A stretch of DNA of 15,163 nt from Prasinococcaceae sp. CCMP 1430 (GCA_013416795.1 RQSC01000030.1:86560-101722), one strand, 5' to 3'; numbered from the stretch's first letter, positions 65 to 14,400 are shown. Translations and numbers: made by a program. The notes: generated by a model from the letters alone, not told the origin.

Positions 65-1483
65 ATGGACGGAGGCGGCGTCACCGCGCAGTGGGAGGCC
101 GCGGGCGGCAGCCCCGCGTCGCAGCTGCTCGCGCCGCATGCCATGGTTCCGGTGACTCACCACCGCCGCACGGCGTCGGAGCCGCCCAAGTCGCTCTTCT
201 TTGGCGGGAGCGCGGTGACGCCCGCCGCGCCGCCGGGGGGCGGCCCGCCCAACCCGCTGCTGTCGCCGCTGAACGAGGCGTTCGGCGCCGGCCTGCATGA
301 GGTGGCGCACGCGCAGCCCGTGCCACCTGGCGGTGCCGCGGCGGTGGGTGCGGGTGTCACGGCGGCGGGGGCCAGTGCCGGCCATGGCGCGCTTGGCGTG
401 CGCGCCGGCCACGCGCCCACAGCAAGGGGCGAAGGCGCCGGGAGCGCCGTCTTCGGGGCAGGTGCCCCCGCGGGCGTGAGGGCACACCACCGGCGTGCGG
501 CGAGTGACAGCACGGCCTTCCTCGGCAAGTTCGCCGGCGCACAGATGGCCGCCTCCTTGGCGGCGGCAGGCGCGAGCCTGGCTAGGGCCGCGGCGCCTGA
601 CGGCGGCTCGGCGGCGGCCACGCCGCAGGTGAGCGGGATCACCAGGGCGCGGTCCATCGACACGATGGACGTGACGGAGGACATGACCTCGGCGATGGAG
701 CGCTTCCACGCGCTCGCGGGCGGTGCCGCCTCTGTGGGCACCGCGGTCGCGGTGAAGAGCGAGGAGCCCGTGCCGGCGGCTTCGGCGCCCCCTGTGGCGG
801 GCGGCCAGGCCAAGGCGGGCGGAGAGCGCAAGCGCACGCGCACGCGCAAGAAGAAGGCCAAGCCGAAGCCGACTGGCGTAGCCGCGGAGGCGGCTGCGGC
901 AGCCAAGGCGGCGGTGCCCAGCGTCGCCGACGGCAAGGGCGGCATTCCTGCGAGCGACCTCGATGACAAGACGGCCGTCGCGCTCGCGCTCGCGCCGGCG
1001 CCGCAGAAGTTCGACGCGACGTCGCTCGACCCCAAGAAGGCCCGTCGTGTGCTCGCCAACCGCCAGTCCGCCCAGCGCTCTCGCCTTCGCAAGATTCAGT
1101 ACATCAGCGAGCTCGAGAAGCGTGTGAACGCCATGCAGGACGAGGCTGAGGGACTCGAGAAACAGGTGGACGAGTTCCGCAAGCACACGAGCGTACAGGA
1201 GATCGAGCTGCAGCAGCTGCGCGTGAAGCTGAACTCGCTCAATTCACAGATGCAGTACAAGGACGCCGTCTTCGAGAACCTCAAGAGCGAGGTCGAGACG
1301 CTGCGCCAGGCCGAGGCCATGCACCGCGCGTCGCTCCAGGCGAACGCGGAGCCTTTCCTGCCGGACAGCGCAGGGACATTCGTACCAACCTCCACGTCCA
1401 CGATGGCGCTCAGCCCCGAGGTCCCACTGATCGAGCCCAAGGGCGCTGACATGTGGCCGTCAGGCCCCACGCTCTCCATCTGA
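65..1483 (+). CDS. bZIP transcription factor, plant group E-like (bZIP34/bZIP61 type), 472 aa, apparently intronless
   Basis: Basic region DPKKARRVLANRQSAQRSRLRKIQYISELEKRV (from 1028) is followed by a long zipper ending YKDAVFENLKSEVETLRQ. This matches the recalled group E pattern ANRQSAQRSRVRKLQYISELE...FKDA..E.LK.E..RLRQ. The N-terminus has HHRRTASE and HHRRAASDSTAFL motifs and a basic NLS-like RKRTRTRKKK (827-856). ATG context is gcagcATGG and third positions are strongly G/C-biased. Confidence 0.93.
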   Translation: MDGGGVTAQWEAAGGSPASQLLAPHAMVPVTHHRRTASEPPKSLFFGGSAVTPAAPPGGGPPNPLLSPLNEAFGAGLHEVAHAQPVPPGGAAAVGAGVTAAGASAGHGALGVRAGHAPTARGEGAGSAVFGAGAPAGVRAHHRRAASDSTAFLGKFAGAQMAASLAAAGASLARAAAPDGGSAAATPQVSGITRARSIDTMDVTEDMTSAMERFHALAGGAASVGTAVAVKSEEPVPAASAPPVAGGQAKAGGERKRTRTRKKKAKPKPTGVAAEAAAAAKAAVPSVADGKGGIPASDLDDKTAVALALAPAPQKFDATSLDPKKARRVLANRQSAQRSRLRKIQYISELEKRVNAMQDEAEGLEKQVDEFRKHTSVQEIELQQLRVKLNSLNSQMQYKDAVFENLKSEVETLRQAEAMHRASLQANAEPFLPDSAGTFVPTSTSTMALSPEVPLIEPKGADMWPSGPTLSI

Positions 1484-2045: not shown

Positions 2046-3137
2046 TCACAGCTCCGCCACGAGCATGGACAATTCCTCGCGAAAGAAGGCCATCGCCCCG
2101 GCGGCGTGCGTCATAGGGTATCTGTGGCCCCCGGCAAGCCACCGAGTCTCGAAATGTCGCGATGTGTGCCTCTCCCACGCGCTTATTTGGTCCTCGCGGT
2201 AGCGGTTGTCGTCCTCGGCGCCCATCGCACACAGCGCCACAGGCAGCGCGTCCTGGCTGGTGGGAACGTACGTCTCGATCATCTCGAAGTCTTTCTGGAG
2301 CATGGGGTACACCTGATCACGGACTAGTGCCCGTTCGCGTGGGAGCATAAGCGAGTGCGGCTGTCAGCAGTGGTATGCGGCTCCGCATGGCCTCGGCGCC
2401 GCCAATGCGGCGCGCCCAGCGTTCCCCAGCGCGCGCGCGCGGCTGCAAGCGTGCGCGTTCGCACCGTGCTCGCTCTCGAGTCCCGGGATGTGTCCGTAGC
2501 GGCGGCCCCACGCCTTCCAGAAGCGCTCCTTCGGCAGTCGGCTGAAGGGCGTCGGATCGACGTCGTGCTTGAGGTGGTGCAGGTGCGGCGCGCGGTTCGC
2601 ACTCGCGTAGAGCTTTCGCGGCAGCGGCAGCCCGCGCGCCTGAGCCTGAGCGCACACCTCGTACGCGAGCCACGCGCCGAGTGAGTGTCCGAGTACGCAG
2701 TATGGTTTGTCGCATAGCAGCGCGCTGCACTCGTCCAGGAACGCTGCCGCCGCCTTTGTCATGCGGATGAAGCTCCTGTCGGTTGGGCGCGAGCCACGGC
2801 CGGGCAGCTCGATGACGCATACCTCGATTCGATCGCTCAGCGCGCCCGGCTCGAGCCACCTTTCCCACACGGCGGCACCAGCACCCGCCTGTGGGAACAC
2901 AATGAGTCGCATCGGCGCATCGGGCGCCGCGTTGAGCGTGCGAGCGCGGCCGTGCTCGTCGACCACGCCCACCTGCGCCAGGTCGATCGGAAACCACAGC
3001 CACCTGCTGTCGGGCAGCACGCAACGCGCATTGCGCGGCTGCCCGTCCGCGATCGCGCCGGGCGAGCCTGGGCCCACGACTCCGTCGCCTCCCCGCGGCA
3101 GGCCGTCCGCGGCCGCAGCGCCGCCGGGCGCGCCCAT
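2046..3137 (-). CDS. Stand-alone type II thioesterase (GrsT/RifR-like alpha/beta hydrolase), 2 exons, 316 aa
   Basis: Exon 1 is 3137-2465, intron 2464-2324 (GTGCG...CTGAC...CTAG), exon 2 is 2323-2046. Splicing is in frame (951 nt) and gives ESEH-V-RDQVYPMLQKDFEMIETY. TEII motifs: FPQAGAG, IELPGRG, nucleophile elbow GHSLG (2690-2676), AEDD, and GGH (His at 2126-2124). The ORF-track start at 3155 is GTG; the first in-frame ATG is 3137. Confidence 0.9.
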
Positions 3138-3339
3138 GCCGCCCGGCGACCACACGGCCCCGCGCGCCTCCCGAGCGCATCCGCGCGCGCGTGTGGCCCG
3201 CGCCGTGCGCTCACCTGCCCTCGGGGGAGGGAGAGAAGCGAGGGGGGAACGAGCCGGTGGCGCGCGGGGGCGCGCGCCCAGCGGCGCGCCGCCGCCCGGG
3301 GGAACGCCACCTCGCGCGGACGTACAGCACGGTGCGTCG

Positions 3340-3480
3340 CGTTAAGGTTTCGCAGTCCGATATTTTAGGTTAAGTCATGAATTAGGGTTTTTGTCTTGCG
3401 CCAACCACGCGTTTTGACCTGGCGCGCCCGCGCCGCATCGCAGCCGTTTTGACCTCGCTCGCGCGGCGGGCCCAAACCCT
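3340..3480. promoter_or_regulatory. Putative promoter of the thioesterase gene with telo-box, site II-like element and a duplicated TTTGACC (W-box-like) motif
   Basis: AT-rich patch with a perfect telo-box AAACCCTAA (minus, 3390-3382), AAACCCT (plus, 3474-3480), TTGGGCCC (minus, 3475-3468), and an 11-bp direct repeat CGTTTTGACCT at 3410-3420 and 3445-3455. Confidence 0.5.
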
Positions 3481-3517
3481 CGGCGCGCGCGCGCGCGCGC
3501 CACACGCCGCGCGGCGG

Positions 3518-3919
3518 GCGGTACGGGCACCTGCGCATCGCCTTGGGGTCGGCCGTGTCGTAGCGCCGCCCGGTGAGGGACTCCCAGAAGATAGCCCGTC
3601 GCCTGCTGTCGCGCACGGCCACCCACGCGTGCGGCCCCGTCGCGTCGCGGCCGAGCACCACCCACGCGTCCAAGTTGAAGCCGAGGAGGAGGGAGCACAG
3701 CAGCGTAGCGTGGTCGAGCCTGCTCGCCCAGCCCTGGGCGAACACGAGCGCGGCACCCGCCCACGTCGGCTCAAACGCCAGGGCGTTGCCCATCGCGGCG
3801 GCACCCCGTCGGCGCTCGCGCTCCTCCTCGCCGGCGGGTATGAGCGAGACGAAGCGCGCCGCCTCGCGCGGCGACGCAATTGAACGCCCGGCCTGCTGCG
3901 GCCGCACCGTGCTCACGCA
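3518..3919 (-). CDS. CEP76: CEP76-like centriolar protein fragment (transglutaminase-like domain); 5' end lost at the N, 3' part not found; possibly a pseudogene
   Basis: CVSTVRPQQAGRSIASPREAARFVSLIP...DHATLLCSLLLGFNLDAWVVLG...PHAWV...IFWESLTGRRY...PYR aligns with recalled CEP76 motifs (VCSYVKPLRAGRLLDTPRQAARFV; DHANLLCSLLLGYGLEAFVCVG; PHAWV; FWESLTGHRY; PYR). The 449-aa ORF 3365..4714 is a chimera of this fragment and antisense sequence of the next gene. Confidence 0.8.
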
Positions 3920-3920
3920 N
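3920..3920. other. Single N: probable scaffold gap or contig junction
   Basis: This is the only ambiguous base in the window. Homology to CEP76 (minus) and to F1-alpha (plus) both stop exactly here, and both genes lack their 5' parts. Confidence 0.8.
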
Positions 3921-5206
3921 GCGACCACGCCTCGGACGCTGAGCTGCTCGAGGCGGAGATGCAGGAGGGCGACGTAGTGGTCGCATGCTGCGGCGCGTAC
4001 GAGGGCGCGGCCACCAGCGCGGAGGAGTGGCGCGCGCGCGTGCGCGCGGCTGCCGGGCCGAGTGCCGACGCCGTCGACGCCAACCTCACCGTCGTGCACT
4101 CCTCGCCGGATGCGGGCGCGGGCGAGCGCTACCTGTGCGCCCAGGCCGCGTGCGCGGTCGCCGAGGGCTCCGCCGCGGCCGGCGACAGCACGCTGGTGGT
4201 ACTGGACGACGCGGGCGCGCTGTCGGGCTTCTGGAAGGCGGTGTCTGAGGTGGCTCCCGCTGAGCTCAACGTGCAGGCGAAGCAGGAGGTGCAGGAGGGC
4301 GACGAGGAGGGTGCCAAGGCCGTCGAGGAGATGAACTCGGCCATGGTTCAGGTGGCGGGCATGCTGGTGAGCAAGGAGGCCGCCGAGCGTCGCGGCATCT
4401 TCTCGTCGCTGCTGCAGCGCGCAGCATGCCTGTCGGAGGGCGCGGGCGGCGGCGAGATCTCGCTGGTGGCGATGGCATGCGAAGCTGGAGCCGCCGCCAA
4501 CGCCGCCTCCGGTCGCGAGGCTGCGATCGTGCAGAAGCAGATTGAGAAGGTGATGGCGTACGAGACAATCACGGACGAACAGAAGGAGCGCATGGTGGCC
4601 GCACTCCGCGAGAAGCTCCCGCAGGACGCCGCGGGCGGCGGCGACGGCGCACAGGCTCAGTCCTTCGTCTCGCAGGAGGTGTCTGAGGAAATCAAGAGCA
4701 TCTCCGACGGCCACGTCGTCCTGGAGGGCTCGCCGGCGTCGGATGGGGCCGCATTCACGGTGGACCTGCGTGGCTCACTCGTGCGCATTGGTTCGCGTGC
4801 GGCGCTGCCCACCACGCGCGCGGTGGCGTCGCGCATGCGCCTGGAGCTCGTGCAGACGCTGGACGAGCTCGAGTATTCCGCGTCGGGCTCCGAGGAGGAA
4901 AACCTCGACGAGGGCCTCAAGGCGCGCCGTGCGCGCCTGCTGGCCGCCGTAGAGGCGATGCACCAAAACGAGCTCGCTGCGGGCGTCGATAGGCAGGCGT
5001 TGGTGCTGTGGGCGATCGACAGGGGGCTCCTCGACGGCGTCGCGACGGACGATTCCTTCAGCTTCGCTGTCGCCGACGCCGCCGCGGACGCCGCCGCGCG
5101 AGCGGCACCCGAGGCGGCGGCAGAGCTGGCGGCGGAGGGCGCCGTCGACGATGAGGCCGCCGCCGGCGCGCTCGAGAGCGCTTTCCGCGCGGCGCTCGCT
5201 GAGTAA
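3921..5206 (+). CDS. Divergent F1-ATPase alpha-subunit-like protein, 5'-partial (frame open from the N; the Met at 3959 is probably internal)
   Basis: Colinear with AtpA: DVVVACCG~DVICVYVAIG; ERYLCAQAACAVAE~LQYLAPYTGAALAE; TLVVLDD~TLIIYDD; GIFSSLLQRAACLS~YLHSRLLERAAKLS; GGGEISLVAMACE~GGGSMTALPIVET; IKSISDGHVVL~VISITDGQIFL; SLVRIGSRA~SVSRVGSAA; VASRMRLELVQ~VAGKLKLELAQ. No N-terminal beta-barrel or Walker A is visible. Codon usage matches the nuclear neighbours. Confidence 0.85.
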
Positions 5207-5289
5207 TGCAAGCCCGTCACCTTCACGTCAGTGTGTGTACGCACACGCACACACACTCAGACAAACGCTGGCCTCCGTGCGCTACTACG

Positions 5290-5451
5290 AACCCTATAGA
5301 TTTGAACCCTTATTCCTCGGCGACGGGTTTTCACATCAAATTCAATAATCGATTCAAACCCACTTGTGAGGAGTATCCCGTGGTTGATATATATATATTT
5401 ATTCGTATGCACAATTACTTGGGGTATGAGGGTTTCGGGATGCGGTTAGGG
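5290..5451. promoter_or_regulatory. AT-rich intergenic patch upstream of the RCC1 gene with degenerate telo-box-like motifs and an (AT)n/TATA-like run
   Basis: AACCCTAT 5290-5297, AACCCTTA 5305-5312, GGGTTT 5325-5330, AAACCCA 5356-5362, (AT)n 5387-5398, AGGGTTT 5429-5435, TTAGGG 5446-5451. Confidence 0.4.
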
Positions 5452-5595
5452 GGTGCGCTGCGGGTGCGCCACACAGGCGCCCGCGCACCGCGCTCGCGTC
5501 GACGCAGCGACGCGGGGCGGGCCCGCCACGACGGCGACGGCAGCGGTCCGGCGAATGCGCGCGTGCTCGCGCGCGTGCGCGGCGTCGGCGCCGCG

Positions 5596-7137
5596 ATGGC
5601 CGCGGCTGCGTTTGCTCCCGCCTCCGCGCGCGTGCCCGCAGCGAGCGAGCGAGCGCCGGGCAGGCCGTGCGACACAATCGCGTGCGGTGGCACCCACACG
5701 GCGTTCATCGACGTCGAGGGCAGCGTATGGACCTTCGGCGCCAACGACAGGGGCCAGCTCGGTCGGCCCGAGGTCGACACGACAAATGGCTCGTGGGGGC
5801 GGCCAGGGCGCGTACGTGGGCTGCGCGAGAGGGCGGTGGCCGTCGCGGCCGGCCACCATCACACGCTGGTCGCCCTCGCCGACGGTTCAGGTGCGGGGGC
5901 AAGGGCGAATGAAGGCCAGCGCGAGCTCGCGTGCGCGCGCGCGAGTCGCGCACGGAAGCAGTGGCGCGCGCTGATGTGTCTCTCTGACGTGCTCGCGCGC
6001 GTCTACCTTCGCATTTTCGCGCGTGCTCGGTGTTGTGCCCCACAGTGATGTCGTTTGGCTGCAACGCTTCCGGCCAGCTCGGTACTGGGCCCTCGCTCAC
6101 CGCCACTGCGGGCCGCGCGCCCGCGCTGGTGGCCTCACTCGGCGATGAGCGCGTGGTCTCCGTCGCAGCGGGCGCATCGCATTCGCTAGTGGCGACCGAT
6201 GGCGGCGCCGTCTTTGCCTTCGGCTCGCGCAAGGACGGCGTCCTGGGCAAGGATGAGAAGAGGTCGTTCCTTACTGGCTTTCTGCCTGGCGCGGCCGTCC
6301 GCGCGATGGGCGCGGCGCCGCCGCAGCATTACCCGGCGCAGGTGCCTGGCACAGGTACGCGTGAGCGTGCACGCGCGTGTGCCCGCGCGCGAGCGCGTCG
6401 GCGCGACTGCGCTCGCTCGCGGGCGCGCGGGCGCAGTGCTACCCACAAGGGATCGCACACTCACGCTCCTCCGCGCACGCGCCGCGCGCGCAGGCACTGG
6501 CGAGGGATGCTTCTTTGCCGCGCGCGTCGCTGCGGGCCACCACCACTCGGCGGCGCTCACCGACCGCGGCGCGGTGTACACGTGGGGGCGTGGTCGCGAC
6601 TATCAGCTCGGACACGGCGACCACGCGAGCACTTCTCGAGCGCGGCGCTTGCGCGGCGCTAGCACAGGACCGCTTGCGCACATCGCGTGCGGTGGCTACC
6701 ACACGCTGCTCGTCGGCGGCGGTGGAGGCGTGTGGGCGGTGGGGAATAACGAACACGGCTGCCTGGGCACGGGCGCGCAGCCCGGCACCGTACACGGCGA
6801 GCCAGAGCGGTGCGTGGGGCTCGAGGGGGCACGCGTGGTGAGCGCCGCCGCAGGTTGGAAGCACTCGGCGGCAGTCGACGAGTCCGGCAGGCTCTTCACG
6901 TGGGGCTGGGGCGGCAGCAGCGGGATGGTTGATGCGTGGGCTTCTAGCGGTGGTCAGCTCTGCAGTGGGCGCGACCGCGACCGATGGGAGGCCGGCCAGG
7001 TGGAGTTGCCCCAAGGCGCGCGCGTGACGGCCGTGGCATGCGGATTCAACCACACGGCGGCCATCGTCGAGGCGGCCTCTGAGAGCGAGCTCGAGCGCGT
7101 CACCGACCAACTTGACGCGGCGGCAGGGACGGCCTGA
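5596..7137 (+). CDS. RCC1-repeat seven-bladed beta-propeller protein, 3 exons, 415 aa
   Basis: Exons 5596-5890, 6046-6354 and 6494-7137 (1248 nt). Both introns are phase 1 GT-AG (5891-6045, 6355-6493) and join three ORF-track frames. Seven RCC1 units: IACGGTHT..FGANDRGQLG, VAAGHHHT..FGCNASGQLG, VAAGASHS..FGSRKDGVLG, VAAGHHHS..WGRGRDYQLG, IACGGYHT..VGNNEHGCLG, AAAGWKHS..WGWG..SSGGQL, VACGFNHT. The start ATG is inferred. Confidence 0.92.
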
Positions 7138-7671: not shown

Positions 7672-9876
7672 TCAGGATGCGCGGGCACGCTTGCGAGCTT
7701 GCTCTTTCCCCAGTGACTCCTCGTGCGATTCGGCGGCGACCGTGGGCTCGGGTGTGCTCTGGCGAAGTGGGAGGTGCGCGTCCGCCATTGCCATCGCTGC
7801 TTGGAGCTTTGCCTCAAGCAGAGATGCCGCAGCGGCACGATCGCCGCCTTCGTTATTCGTGTCCAAAGGCGCCGAGGGGGCATCGATAGCTGCAGGAGAT
7901 ATGCAATCTGTGCCAACGAGCGGCTGCTTGGCTTCATCGTGTTCCGCAGACGCCCTTTCCAAGCGCGAGTACCGCCTGATCCATGCTCTCTGGTTCCGGT
8001 GAGTCCGCACGTAGGGCGCCAGAGCATCGAATGCAGCAGCGGGATTGGCAAACACCTGCACTCCTGCTAGCAAAATTGCATCCTCGATCGGAGTCCAATG
8101 CTTGGCAGTAGTCTCGGACAGGGTCAAGCCTGTCGCTGAGCTATCGTTTGTGCCAAAGATGTGGAACTTGGGCTGCGACTCTGAATCCGCGGCGTGTACG
8201 GCGTGCGCGAAGGCGGTGGCGATGACATCGAAAGCAGCCAAGCCCGGGGTGACTGCTGAAATTTTCGGGTTCGCGTCGTCGGTGCTAGCGTTGATGTCCC
8301 GCCGGAGCACATTTTTTCTCTTCCTCCACGCGGCGCATGATCGAGGCTCGCATAAGACCGGGCGCAGCGCCCTGTGAGCAGTTGACACTCCCTGGTACAC
8401 ATCCACTGCCGCAAGCACAATGGCATCCTCTACCGGCGTCCAAAACGTAGGTCGCCTCCAGCTCGTGGTGTGTTCTACTGCGCCCTCCGCGCGCTTCTGC
8501 TTCGCCACGCCAGATTCAGCTCCAGTTTCCATTGGCGAAGGGTCGGCCAAGATGGGCGCGCTGCCGTCTCGCGGAGAGGCGGACTGCTCAGGCTGGGGCA
8601 CATCATGCCGAACTCGCTCAGTGTCGCTGCCTCCTGCTGCCGGTTCGCTCGTGGTATCGGGCACATTGCCAGTGGCATCGCGTGGAGCTGCAATATTCTT
8701 TTCGTGGACATGTACCAATGCAGCAAGCTCAGGAGCAGTGCCGTCGCCACCGACCGCATCGATCATATCTGCCAGAAATGCTTCGGCTGGACCGGGACTC
8801 CCGGAGGATGCCTGCGCCAGCGCCTGGCGAGCTGCCTCGTCGGCACCGGCCGCGCCTGCGCCTGCCGCTGATTTCTCTGTCACCGCACGCGGTTCGATGT
8901 TCAGCAAGCTATCGATGGCGTCGCACAGCACACCAGCATCGCCAGATTCGCTCGCTCGTGCGATGTCCCCTTCGTAGTCACACTCGCCCCACCCAAGCGC
9001 TTCGAGATCGCGGCGTGCTTCCGCCTCCATCACCGCCGAATACGTCGTCGGCTTCAGGTCGGCTCCGCTCATGCCTGGATCCGCTGGCATCACTGGTTGC
9101 GACTGCTGCCCCAATAAACTCGAGTCCTCTCGTGGCGCAGAGGGCAAGATGCCAGGCACAGGTTCACCGTCGTCTGCCGCACGCCGCAGGGGGATGTGAT
9201 GGTGTGCCGGCAGAAGGCCACTGAGTGCTTCCATGGTGATGTGTTGTGGGCTTTGCAAGGTCTTGCCGACCAGCAATGCCACCAGCGATGCGGCGTGCGC
9301 GCTCTTGTCGAGCTTTCCTCTTGCCGTGGCTGCAGCCTTGCCATCGCCCAATGATGCCGCGCACATTGTCGGCAAATCCTCGAAGCGCCCCTGGAAGGGC
9401 GACGCCTGCGATCGCGCAAACGCACCAGCGGCGCTCGTGGTAGCAGTGGTATCCCCTTGTTCCTTGTCCGAGTCTTTCCCGTATTCCTGCGTGGGCTGCC
9501 AGCCGTTCATTCTCACAACGTGCGCGAGGTGCCCTGTCTTGGCTCCCAGAGGGTGCTTCTGCGAATACGCACCTACCGCAGAGCTGCCCTTGAAGCCCAA
9601 CTTTGAGAGGTGCGCAGGGTCTGCAGCGAACGTTGGCACCATCGCCACTCCCGCGGACAATGCACCCACTGGCGCGCCAGTCAAGCAGTAGAACAGCTCC
9701 GCGTAGTCCTCCAGTGCGAAATCGTGCGCGGGTGGAGCAGGGACGGGCGCGCCCATCGCGGCTGCCTCGGACGCCAGCGGCGCCTGCGTGACGCCAACCG
9801 CACCCGCGGCAGCCGCCCTGTCGGCGGCAAGCGCCTCCACGCGCGCGCGCGCCAACGTGCACGCCGCCTCCGCCAT
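7672..9876 (-). CDS. Uncharacterised protein of about 734 aa with two degenerate Myb/SANT-like repeats near the C-terminus
   Basis: Open frame of more than 2.2 kb. First ATG at 9876 (cagcgATGG); the ORF-track start at 10020 is GTG and an upstream exon cannot be excluded. Repeats: WTPVEDAIVLAAV...RSCAAWRKRKNVLRR (8442-~8300) and WTPIEDAILLAGV...RNQRAWIRRYSRLER (8097-~7955). Confidence 0.72.
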   Translation of the reverse strand: MAEAACTLARARVEALAADRAAAAGAVGVTQAPLASEAAAMGAPVPAPPAHDFALEDYAELFYCLTGAPVGALSAGVAMVPTFAADPAHLSKLGFKGSSAVGAYSQKHPLGAKTGHLAHVVRMNGWQPTQEYGKDSDKEQGDTTATTSAAGAFARSQASPFQGRFEDLPTMCAASLGDGKAAATARGKLDKSAHAASLVALLVGKTLQSPQHITMEALSGLLPAHHHIPLRRAADDGEPVPGILPSAPREDSSLLGQQSQPVMPADPGMSGADLKPTTYSAVMEAEARRDLEALGWGECDYEGDIARASESGDAGVLCDAIDSLLNIEPRAVTEKSAAGAGAAGADEAARQALAQASSGSPGPAEAFLADMIDAVGGDGTAPELAALVHVHEKNIAAPRDATGNVPDTTSEPAAGGSDTERVRHDVPQPEQSASPRDGSAPILADPSPMETGAESGVAKQKRAEGAVEHTTSWRRPTFWTPVEDAIVLAAVDVYQGVSTAHRALRPVLCEPRSCAAWRKRKNVLRRDINASTDDANPKISAVTPGLAAFDVIATAFAHAVHAADSESQPKFHIFGTNDSSATGLTLSETTAKHWTPIEDAILLAGVQVFANPAAAFDALAPYVRTHRNQRAWIRRYSRLERASAEHDEAKQPLVGTDCISPAAIDAPSAPLDTNNEGGDRAAAASLLEAKLQAAMAMADAHLPLRQSTPEPTVAAESHEESLGKEQARKRARAS

Positions 9877-10229
9877 CGCTGAGCCCCCTCCGTCAGCGCT
9901 GCCAGCAATGTCACCGGCCGCAGCAGGGGCACCCAACTTCAAATGCGCGCAAAAAGAGCCGCTCGTGGCGCGCGTGCGAGCCGCGCCGGCCGCCGCGCGT
10001 CCGCGGACCGCCCAGAGCACGGCGCTGGGAGGGGAAAGGGCGCGCAGGCGCGCGGGGCGCGCGCGACGTGTGGCGCGCCGGCTCGCGGCGTCAGCATGCG
10101 CCCACTGCCTCTCTGCGCGCTCGATTTCTATTTTTGAACATCGAGGTCAAATTGCATTTACTTTTGTTCGACAATGGCTTTTGATATGACATGCGGAGTG
10201 AGGTGCGCTGCCGGGCGTCGGCCACAGCA

Positions 10230-11495: not shown

Positions 11496-14400
11496 TCACT
11501 CGATGATGGCGGCCGTCTTGGGGACGTCCACGACGTCGCCGTTTCCGGACGCGCTCGACTCCGTCGCTGCGTTGCCGTTGCCATTTAAGGCTGCGTCGGA
11601 CTTGGCCAGAATCTGCAGGTCAGCAAGGTGCTGCCTCCGGAACTTGTCGATGGACGCCGCGATGTCGTCCGCAGGCAGCTTGGCCTCCGACAGGATGGCC
11701 GCGGCGAGCTGCAGCGACGGCTCGAGGGTCTCGGGGACCACCGCGGTGGCGCCCGCCTTTTCCAGCTGATGCCCGTGCTCGATGTCGTGCGCGCGCACGT
11801 AGATCTTGAGGTCGGGGAAGTTCTTGCTCATGGCCCACACCGCGCGGTAGTTGGCGCCGGGCGTGTCCAGCGTGATGACCGCGCCCGCTGCGCGGTCGGC
11901 GCCCACCGACTTGAGCACCTGCGGCGAGCCCGCGTCGCCGAAGAAGATAGGAAGGTCCTTCTTGCGGCCCTGCGAGATGCGCTCGGAGCGCACGTCCAGC
12001 GCGACGTAGGGCACGTTCTGCTCGCTGAGGATGCCGCCAATCAGGCGCCCCACGCGGCCGTAGCCCGCAATGATGACGTGGCCGGAGATGCCGTCCACGT
12101 CGCCCTCGGAGACGGTCATCGACGCAGTGTTCTCGGTGGCCATCTTCTCCGCGATGAGGGCGCCGAGCTGCGCCAGGTACGGCGTGATAGCCATCGAGAT
12201 GGCCACCACGAGGAAGAGGGTCGAGCTGAGCTGCGCCGACATGATGCCCACGCCCACGGCCTCCCCGAATGCCACGAAGGCAAACTCGCCGCCCGGCCCA
12301 AGCAGCATGCCCGTCTGAAGGCCCTGGACGACGCTCAGGCCGAAGGCCTTGCCCGTGGCGATGATCACCGCGAGCTTGCCCGCGACGAGCGCCACGAGCA
12401 TCGCCATGACGCCACCGGGGTTGCTCGTAAAGACGGCTGGATCCATCGACATGCCCACCGACATGAAGAAGAGGCCCAGCAGGATGCCGCGGTACGGCTG
12501 GATGTCCGCCTCGACCTGGAGGTGGTACTCGGTCTCGGCGACAAGGAGGCCCGCCAGGAAGGCGCCGAGGGCCATCGACAGGCCGGCGGTCTGCGTGGCC
12601 ACTGACGTGCCGAGCGCCACAAGCAGCGTGACCGACGCGAAGAGGTCCTGGTTGCCCTCGTCGGCGATGCGCTTGTACACGGGCCTGAGCAGCACGCGTC
12701 CGGCGGCGACGATGGCCACCATGGAGATCACCGCCTTAATGGCGGCGAACACCAGCGCGCGGGCAATGGTCGCGAGCGAGCTCCCCGAGTCCGAGGGCGC
12801 CAGCAGCGGGATGAGCATGAGCAGCACCACCACCGCGAGGTCCTGCAGCAGCAGCACGGAGAACGCCGCCCTGCCGTGCCTGCTCTGGCTTTCGCCGCGC
12901 TCGTTGAGCACCTGCAGCACTACGGCGGTGGACGACAGCGCGAGCGCGCCGCCGATGACGATGCCCGCCTGGGTGGTGAGGCCGCCCACGAACACGCACA
13001 CCGCGGCGATGGCCGCGCTGGTCACCACCACCTGCGACAGCCCCAGGCCGAAGACGAACTTGCGCATCGAGCTGAGGCGCTCGATGGAGAGCTCCAGGCC
13101 GATGTTGAAGAGCAGGAAGACCACGCCAATCTCACCGATGTGCTCGATGGCGTGCACGTCCGTCACGATGCCCAGCGCGTGCGGCCCGACCAGCAGGCCC
13201 GCCATCAGGTAGCCGATCACCGGCGAGCCGCCGGGCAGCTTGGTGACGAGCGGCACGGCCACGCAGCTCGCCAGCAGCAGCACGAGTAGGTCGGAGAGCG
13301 ACACGCCGGGCGTGACGGCGGCGGCGGCAGCCGCACCGTCGGCAGGCATCTGCATGTTGGCCAGCCACGGCATCCACTCAGGCGCCGTCTGCGCGATCTC
13401 CACCGACGTGTCCTGCAGCGCCTGCTGCAGGCTCGCGCCACCGAAGTACACCGCGGCGAGCACCGTCGCGGCGATTCCCACGTTGATCAGCATGCTGCGA
13501 TTGGCCTGCACCCACAGCGCCACCTGGTTGGGCTTCTTGGGCTCCGGCTCGCCCTCCTCGTCCAGCAGCTCGGCTGGCACCGCCTCGGCCGCCATGGTCT
13601 TCTTTTTGGCCTTCTTCTCGGCCTTCTTCTCGGCCTTCTTCTCGGCCTTCTTCTCGGCCTTCTTGGCGGCCTTCTCCGCCTTGGCCTCCGCCTTGGCCTC
13701 CGCAGCCCGCACCGCCTCCTCGGCCTCGAGCTCAGCGATGGACGCCTCGGCGTCCTCCGAGCGCACCGCGCGGCTGAGCTCGAGCGCTGCCTCGGCGATC
13801 GAGTCGGAGAGCGCACGCGCCTCGGCCAGCGCCGCCTCGGCGGCGTCCACCTCGCGCTCGGCGTTGACCTCATCCTCGAAGGCCGCCGTGGCGCGCTCCA
13901 TGGCCGCCTGCACCTCCTTCTCGGCCTCGAAAGCCGCCTGCTTGGCGTCGAGCACCTTCTGCGCGGCCTCCACCACGAGCATCTCGAGGTCCTCGCGCTC
14001 GCGGGACGCCTTCTTCTGCCGCGACACCGCGTCCGCCAGCGCCATGCGCAGGTCCATGGGCACCGACGGCGCCTCAGTCTCGCCCTCCGCCATCGCGTCG
14101 TCCATCTCCGCCAGGGTCGACTTGTTGGCCGGCGGCGCCGGCGCCTCCTTGGCCGCCGCCTCCGCGCCCGAATCCGCCGCGCCCTCGCCGCCTCCCTTGG
14201 CGTCCTCGCTGCCCCCCGCCGCGGCGTCGTCCTCGCCCGAGCTGCCCACGTCGTCGTCCGTCGCGCCGCCGCCCTCGGCCGCGAGGGCCGCGTCGGCGGC
14301 CTTCTTCTCGGCCTCCTTGTCGGCCTCCTCCTCTGCGAGCTCCGCGGCCGAGGTGATGGCCGCCTCGATCTCCTCGATCTCGCGCGTGGCCTCCTCCTCC

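Follow-up and report, generated by a model that had tools for sequence, protein, structure and literature searches.

The window analysed here is a stretch of 15,163 nucleotides from Prasinococcaceae sp. CCMP 1430 (GCA_013416795.1 RQSC01000030.1:86560-101722). It consists of nuclear DNA of approximately 70% G+C, and the neighbours of the gene in focus, which encodes a protein resembling the alpha subunit of F1-ATPase, are ordinary nuclear genes. The features along the window, the flanking genes being those recognised by Pfam search, are the following:

65-1483, plus strand: bZIP factor
2364-3155, minus strand: thioesterase-fold protein
3522-3919, minus strand: foreign patch, a piece of a CEP76 peptidase-like gene whose proper place in the genome is another one (PF24656, E = 1.5e-18), followed by a single N at 3920
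3921-3971, no strand assigned: foreign patch of another well-expressed locus, known from separate contigs, joined via the common 10-mer 3972-3981 and with an apparent start codon at 3959 inside it
3972-5206, plus strand: native part of the xATPA gene, with the codons for residues 198/199-608 of PRCOL_00005968 and the stop codon TAA at 5204-5206 (tblastn; DNA and RNA contigs from 3972 on)
about 5560-7137, plus strand: RCC1-repeat exons
11496-14249, minus strand: Na+/H+ exchanger with a TrkA-N domain

A short AT-rich island at 3360-3420 (atattttaggttaagtcatgaattagggtttttgtc), flanked by the thioesterase-like gene on the minus strand and the xATPA gene on the plus strand, resembles a divergent promoter region shared by the two. 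Further downstream, a minus-strand open reading frame (ORF) of 782 amino acids (7672-10020) gave no Pfam match at E <= 0.01; it may be spurious in DNA of 60-70% G+C, or an unannotated gene.

The alpha-like gene is seen in the window as an ORF of 415 codons, the frame of which opens at 3959 and closes with the TAA at 5204-5206. By tblastn, residues 199-608 of the EukProt protein PRCOL_00005968-RA (P0001, 608 amino acids) correspond with 100% identity to window positions 3974-5203. A phmmer search of PDB chains with the partial ORF gave F1 alpha chains as the best matches (E = 2.5e-10), and the partial ORF also matched PF00006 and PF00306 weakly. In the Pfam search with the full protein, PF00006 was recognised at E = 8.7e-14, and PF02874 and PF00306 stayed below the Pfam thresholds. 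The closest relative was a marine metagenome protein (P0002, 61% identity), followed by a Chlorella sorokiniana 'ATP synthase subunit alpha' of 722 amino acids (34% identity), and the Chlorella relative led on to dozens of chlorophyte proteins, including CHLRE_10g419050 of Chlamydomonas. A word-index search with the 415-aa ORF as query returned three matches, for which its Ala-rich composition is probably to blame; the family was widened by re-querying with the Chlorella and Micromonas-type relatives, and no SAR (diatom/haptophyte) member was retrieved in this way. We conclude that 3972-5206 on the plus strand corresponds to the 3' two-thirds of an xATPA orthologue, that of Prasinoderma coloniale, xATPA being a nucleus-encoded paralogue of F1-ATPase alpha, and we give the explanation developed here as a whole a probability of roughly 0.9.

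The xATPA family was named by Penot-Raquin et al. (bioRxiv 10.64898/2026.07.08.737214, 9 July 2026) as a monophyletic, divergent homologue of alpha. The Chlamydomonas member is ATP1B (Cre10.g419050), and the family is found in chlorophytes, euglenophytes, dinoflagellates, haptophytes, chlorarachniophytes, cryptophytes and several ochrophyte groups (Penot-Raquin et al.). Its described traits are a 'bump domain' of approximately 60 amino acids, an inconsistently kept P-loop (GxxxxGKT) and a conserved arginine finger; the bump is always inserted at the same place in the central domain, which in P. tricornutum is A444-V499 (Penot-Raquin et al.). Our P0002 matches MATOU-v2.52506259 of their environmental xATPA table along the stretch shown there. 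The preliminary description, which was made from the sequence alone, had allowed for a family that was already characterised, and this is the case: xATPA was described in July 2026, and the P. coloniale copy is an additional member from a deep-branching green lineage. Two transcriptomes, MMETSP0806 and MMETSP1315, we take to be from Prasinoderma. Both were in the search space of the preprint, under 'Chlorophyta / Palmophyllophyceae', and the name 'Prasinoderma' does not occur in its accessible text or supplements (Penot-Raquin et al.). With the P. coloniale copy, xATPA, a recently named protein of microalgae that is widespread and abundant in the environment, now extends to the Prasinodermophyta.

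With regard to the 5' end, it should be underlined that the gene only looks truncated. Residues 1-198 of PRCOL_00005968, which hold Walker A and the beta-barrel, were found nowhere in the window by tblastn. When public contigs were mapped on window 2600-5600, a 15.4-kb DNA contig (X5, record 21) proved to be collinear with and identical to the window over 2600-3521 and 3972-5600, with 842 other letters in between. Approximately 450 nt of foreign sequence thus replace approximately 842 nt of native sequence carrying the 5' third of the gene, hence its truncated appearance. The foreign sequence itself could be traced: window 3518-3919 sits inside other contigs that diverge from the window at both ends (X1, record 4; X5, record 24), while separate contigs in all four runs (records 5, 12, 17 and 25) cover only 3921-3981, and the joins of the patches are overlaps of 4 and 10 nt. 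In the probable source run (X1) the contigs break at the same places, and the gene contig reaches 647 nt beyond 3972 in the upstream direction. L002, a scaffold from the Tara metagenomes with 99.3% identity over the coding part, has the 608-codon ORF uninterrupted, its first 695 nt being without counterpart in the window. These results show that the 5' third of the gene is absent from the window through assembly error and that the gene is not truncated. The native sequence starts at 3972, and not at 3921 as first described, 3921-3971 being foreign; the apparent start 'MQEGD' at 3959 is an artefact of the foreign patch. Gene structure, start codon and truncation are not readable from the mis-assembled 3522-3971.

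A metatranscriptome contig ends with GCAGGCGGCTGCGGGCGTGC before 3972, and when joined to the window it reads Q-A-A-A-G-V-H-V-V-V, exactly as P0001; this read-through shows that there is no intron at the join. An intron placed at 3974 was likewise rejected: tblastn with the 608-aa model detected none of its upstream exons in the window, an AG acceptor compatible with the codons around the GVH-VVV junction is lacking, the RNA reads through, and the DNA contig has 842 letters in the place of 3522-3971. Recovery of the 5' end, as the preliminary description had proposed, succeeded for residues 1-198, found in P0001 and L002, but not for the presumed upstream exon. The part supplied by P0001 comprises the beta-barrel crown and a degenerate P-loop. 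On L002 the in-frame codons before the annotated Met read ...GEPEWQKE, and a stop and a plausible acceptor site lie further upstream. GEPEWQKE matches a conserved xATPA motif, which reads EPNWEEEL in Chlorella and KPEWEQEM in MATOU-v2.52506259, the transcript of P0002, as listed by Penot-Raquin et al. As judged by this upstream reading frame, the 608-aa model is probably truncated at its N-terminus, the annotated Met probably being a false start, and an upstream exon is likely, presumably for a targeting peptide. The frame is open upstream of the annotated start in L002 (1-103) as well as in L001 (1-285), the 61%-identical relative, and encodes (G/K)PEW(Q/E).E in them.

Two smaller differences were seen between the window and the 15.4-kb contig (X5, record 21). 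Where the window has a single base at 3154, in the thioesterase-like gene or at its 5' end, the contig contains 106 additional letters. At 5528, in front of the RCC1-repeat gene, a single window base likewise stands against 201 additional letters of the contig. These are probably small stretches that were collapsed or deleted during assembly.

A decaying organelle-to-nucleus insertion, or a 5'-truncated pseudogene, would also present itself as an ORF that lacks beta-barrel and Walker A and has unrelated sequence and an N in front of it, as seen in the window. However, the independent DNA contigs, the contigs of the source-like run and the Tara scaffold all extend into the coding sequence that the window lacks, orthologues sharing both inserts are spread among the green algae, and RNA contigs cover the gene: window 3972-5132 is covered by contig set X15 (probably a transcriptome) and by marine metatranscriptome contigs (X16). 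The metatranscriptome contigs show 11 strain differences, 10 of them at third codon positions and 9 synonymous. By the Nei-Gojobori method, dN/dS was 0.35 relative to L001 (61% identical) and 0.21 relative to the near-identical Tara scaffold L002, the latter value being based on eight differences only. The inserts, with dN/dS of 0.33-0.44, are constrained like the rest of the gene. RNA coverage and low dN/dS together remove both the pseudogene and the organelle-insertion readings, to which we assign a negligible probability. The xATPA gene of P. coloniale is transcribed and under purifying selection (dN/dS 0.2-0.35), so that the first impression of a selected, nuclear ORF that is no organellar insertion was correct; what was found is the opposite of an untranscribed sequence with dN/dS near 1.

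The protein encoded by the native part contains the following elements, the residue counts being those of a survey of 186 sequences (5 from the Prasinoderma clade, 73 core chlorophyte xATPAs, 68 Micromonas-type xATPAs and 40 canonical alphas):

4190-4210, plus strand: Walker-B-like strand TLVVLDD (Asp276/Asp277), both Asp present in 5/5 Prasinoderma-clade sequences and 40/40 canonical alphas
4235-4381, plus strand: insert 1, residues 286-334, an acidic, partly helical, low-confidence loop in place of alpha RRPPGREAYPGD (alignment A1; 48 aa versus 20 aa in canonical alphas)
4481-4669, plus strand: insert 2, spanning residues 368-430 and corresponding to the 'bump domain' of xATPA; a small module of helices that replaces the QAGDVSAYIPTN loop (alignment A1)
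4697-4723, plus strand: S-I-S-D-G-H-V-V-L, with Ser440, the equivalent of bovine alpha Ser344, adjoining the invariant Asp443-Gly444 (S440, D443 and G444 invariant in alignments A1 and A2)
4784-4786, plus strand: Arg469, the arginine-finger equivalent (bovine alpha Arg373), in 5/5 Prasinoderma-clade, 70/70 ungapped core chlorophyte, 68/68 Micromonas-type and 40/40 canonical sequences
4817-5203, plus strand: C-terminal helical domain, ATP-synt_ab_C-like (weak PF00306 match, E = 0.0066; model helices at residues 483-607; aligns with alpha ~430-500 of PDB chains)

An AlphaFold2 model built from a 51-sequence alignment reached a pLDDT of 85 and a pTM of 0.86. The best 50 PDB matches found by Foldseek were all F1 alpha chains (E = 1e-27 to 1e-24), with TM-scores against canonical alphas of 0.7-0.8 relative to the target. 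The model shows that the whole alpha fold is kept, with beta-barrel crown, nucleotide-binding domain and C-terminal helical bundle. The F1-alpha fold and the motifs first proposed from the sequence were all located where they had been placed, in agreement with the PDB, Pfam and Foldseek searches: ISDGHVVL lies at 4700-4723 and SLVRIG at 4775-4792, and the Arg at 4784, which had been taken as a retained arginine-finger equivalent, was confirmed at codon 4784-4786 and is also invariant in alignments A1 and A2. The protein thus shares with canonical F1 alpha (AtpA/ATP1; PF02874, PF00006 and PF00306) the three-domain fold, the Walker-B Asp and the equivalents of Ser344 and Arg373. It differs in the P-loop Lys/Thr and in the RRPPGREAYPGD and QAGDVSAYIPTN loops, in place of which P. 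coloniale has segments of 48 and 63-65 amino acids, and it is only 22-23% identical to canonical alphas.

The first of these loops had been described as replaced by an acidic helical insert of about 45 amino acids at approximately 4247-4381; when aligned, the segment comprises 48 amino acids in Prasinoderma, compared to medians of 54 in core chlorophytes, 32 in the Micromonas type and 20 in canonical alphas. Its AlphaFold2 confidence is low over residues 290-320 (pLDDT 52-65) and rises over a hairpin at 322-331. Insert 1 leads into this conserved beta-hairpin (xATPA consensus VEYEGMLVS, here VQVAGMLVS) and a helix of the form RR.FFSSLLQRAA, the consensus of the insert end with hairpin and helix being VEYEGMLVS..AA.RRRFFSSLLQRAAK. 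On the evidence of the alignments, insert 1 is a second feature common to the xATPA family; the main text of the preprint contains no discussion of it (Penot-Raquin et al.).

Insert 2, for which about 60 amino acids at approximately 4484-4663 had been estimated, measures 63-65 amino acids after the ETQAG-equivalent strand versus 9 in canonical alphas, with a helical bump of approximately 55. It contains the conserved motif Y..[LI][ST].EQ..[KR]..AAL, and IVQKQIEKVMAYETITDEQKERMVAALREKL (the IVQKQ...REKL stretch) corresponds to window 4526-4618 within it. In the AlphaFold2 model it forms helices at residues 371-376, 379-393, 399-411 and 415-418, with pLDDT values of up to 95. Its alignment position is the same as in all green xATPAs. 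In P. tricornutum the Walker-B-like VVVID is at 366-370, and A444, 74 residues downstream, is the start of the second segment (Table S1 of Penot-Raquin et al.), a spacing that identifies insert 2 as the published bump domain (A444-V499). Orthologues bearing both inserts, a search for which in algal genomes had been suggested at the outset, were found across green algae and proved to be a family-wide feature of green xATPAs.

The P-loop separates the green xATPAs. The question raised earlier of whether a Walker A GKT is present was answered in part: a P-loop was found in P0001, but it reads GAPGSGLG and lies outside the window. This Lys to Leu and Thr to Gly change is common to P0001, P0002 and three further clade members, so that the Walker A GxxxxGK[TS] by which canonical alphas hold a non-catalytic nucleotide was not found in the Prasinoderma protein. 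In contrast, core chlorophyte xATPAs have GxxGSGK[TS]. The P-loop Lys was kept in 70 of the 73 core chlorophyte xATPAs (as GK[ST]) and in all 40 canonical alphas, but in none of the 68 Micromonas-type and none of the 5 Prasinoderma-type sequences; Leu took its place in 65/68 and 5/5 of the latter two groups, respectively. These counts indicate that loss of the nucleotide site is lineage-specific among greens. As judged by its P-loop, the P. coloniale copy would be unlikely to hold a nucleotide at its own site. An independent Lys to Leu change was observed in a core chlorophyte xATPA, that of the snow alga Sanguina (P0060, GPHSSGLSS). A strict link between P-loop loss and a Gln to Arg change at the alpha-Gln208 equivalent was ruled out, as Arg occurs in 16 of the 73 core chlorophyte sequences together with GK[ST].

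To place the protein among its relatives, a maximum-likelihood tree (IQ-TREE, LG+C20) was built from 31 xATPA-type sequences, all from outside SAR because the re-query retrieved no SAR member, and 12 canonical alphas other than those of plastids, with no beta outgroup. The split between xATPAs and canonical alphas received an SH-aLRT value of 100, with the Prasinoderma pair on the xATPA side; the phylogeny that the preliminary description had proposed thus puts the protein inside the xATPA clade. With its xATPA relatives (ATP1B/Cre10.g419050; Phaeodactylum B7FRE6) it has in common the alpha fold, the loop that bears the bump, the degeneration of the P-loop, the conserved arginine finger, nuclear encoding and the clade itself; it is unlike other xATPAs in its very long branch and in an annotated model without a long N-terminal extension.

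These results also bear on whether the protein could be an ordinary nucleus-encoded mitochondrial (or plastid) F1 alpha that merely evolves fast. Prasinophyte-grade organelle genomes normally encode atpA and atp1, which counts against this explanation, as do the clustering with xATPA at SH-aLRT 100, the loss of a P-loop Lys/Thr that all 40 canonical alphas retain as GK[ST], the replacement of the near-invariant RRPPGREAYPGD and QAGDVSAYIPTN by inserts, and the identity of 22-23% to canonical alphas. Moreover, in yeast without ATP1 the diatom xATPA and canonical alpha behaved differently (Penot-Raquin et al.). The annotation of relatives as 'ATP synthase subunit alpha' or 'alpha subunit of mitochondrial F1F0 ATP synthase' and the alpha fold itself speak for an ordinary alpha, but we consider this explanation highly improbable.

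Within the tree, the stem of the Prasinoderma pair is very long, at 1.94 substitutions per site, and because of this long branch the function of the protein may differ by drift from that of other xATPAs. The pair adjoins the Micromonas-type sequences (SH-aLRT 94), outside the core chlorophytes, a grouping that may reflect long-branch attraction. The Micromonas-type (Mamiellophyceae) xATPAs, for example ACO62988 of Micromonas commoda (Table S1 of Penot-Raquin et al.), resemble the P. coloniale protein in the P-loop Lys to Leu change (GEPGTGL[ST]) and in Arg at the alpha-Gln208 equivalent; they differ from it by an identity of only approximately 28%, a shorter insert 1 (32 aa) and a longer bump (median 73 aa). 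P. coloniale is placed by NCBI in a phylum of its own, Prasinodermophyta, apart from Chlorophyta, and the P. coloniale genome paper reportedly also regards the lineage as a distinct phylum that branched early. The presence of xATPA in this phylum bears on the proposal that the family first arose in Chlorophyta (Penot-Raquin et al.). We tentatively suggest, at somewhat less than even odds for the two parts taken jointly, that xATPA predates the split of Prasinodermophyta from other greens and was later lost in streptophytes, and that it comprises two biochemical classes, one with the P-loop kept (core chlorophytes and some diatoms, e.g. Odontella) and a 'prasinophyte-type' with Lys to Leu (Prasinoderma and Mamiellophyceae). 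If this is true, it would be an oversimplification to describe xATPA across the board as a protein without an ATP-binding site, and nucleotide binding would act as a switch that differs between lineages. The P-loop contrast among green xATPAs offers a natural test of whether nucleotide binding matters.

As to what the protein does, the mechanistic evidence comes from the diatom orthologue in an unreviewed preprint, P. coloniale being represented here by sequence and model. The Phaeodactylum xATPA is plastid-localised and pulls down beta and gamma, and its Kd for beta measured by SPR is 1.2e-8 M versus 2.3e-9 M for alpha, i.e. approximately five-fold weaker binding (Penot-Raquin et al.). AF3 predicts a pentamer of two alpha, two beta and one xATPA, which is left incomplete because the bump blocks a third beta (Penot-Raquin et al.). 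By analogy, the P. coloniale protein would dock on beta (and gamma) in an alpha-like manner via its intact arginine-finger face, where Ser440 and Arg469, the residues that an alpha would give to the catalytic site of the neighbouring beta, are kept, and on the other face the bump would block recruitment of the next beta. The outcome might be an F1-like sub-complex that remains incomplete and cannot rotate, or the sequestration of free beta. The protein would then regulate or buffer the biogenesis or activity of an organellar F1, probably that of the plastid, instead of being a working ATP-synthase subunit. Physiologically, it could serve to regulate the biogenesis of beta or F1, or in stress acclimation. 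The diatom knockout grows poorly in cold, at low salinity and in constant light (Penot-Raquin et al.). The original proposal of a neofunctionalised paralogue that is unlikely to fit a normal alpha3beta3 ring and perhaps acts as regulator, assembly factor or decoy is supported by the present results and agrees with the published diatom data.

A regulator of F1 is put forward here as a hypothesis, and the RNA-seq and physiology of the preprint suggest no role in ATP-synthase function: protein-metabolism genes change and there is neither an ATP-synthase nor a photosynthesis phenotype (Penot-Raquin et al.). These data would suit a genuine xATPA that works in another way than through a blocked ring, such as a chaperone or CES-type translational regulator of beta, a subunit that forms a separate ring together with some unrecognised beta-like protein, or a protein whose role lies outside the plastid. 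The intact P-loop of 70/73 core chlorophyte xATPAs may likewise point to an activity that depends on nucleotide in some family members, and the occurrence of xATPA in non-photosynthetic labyrinthulomycetes (Penot-Raquin et al.) would fit an extra-plastid role. On the other hand, no divergent beta-like partner is reported in the accessible parts of the preprint (Penot-Raquin et al.) and none turned up in our searches; a separate ring with such a partner has no support. We regard these other modes as unlikely overall, yet as deserving appreciable weight. Against them, and for docking on beta as outlined above, stands the arginine finger, which was present in every sequence and argues that contact with the catalytic site of beta is the selected function.
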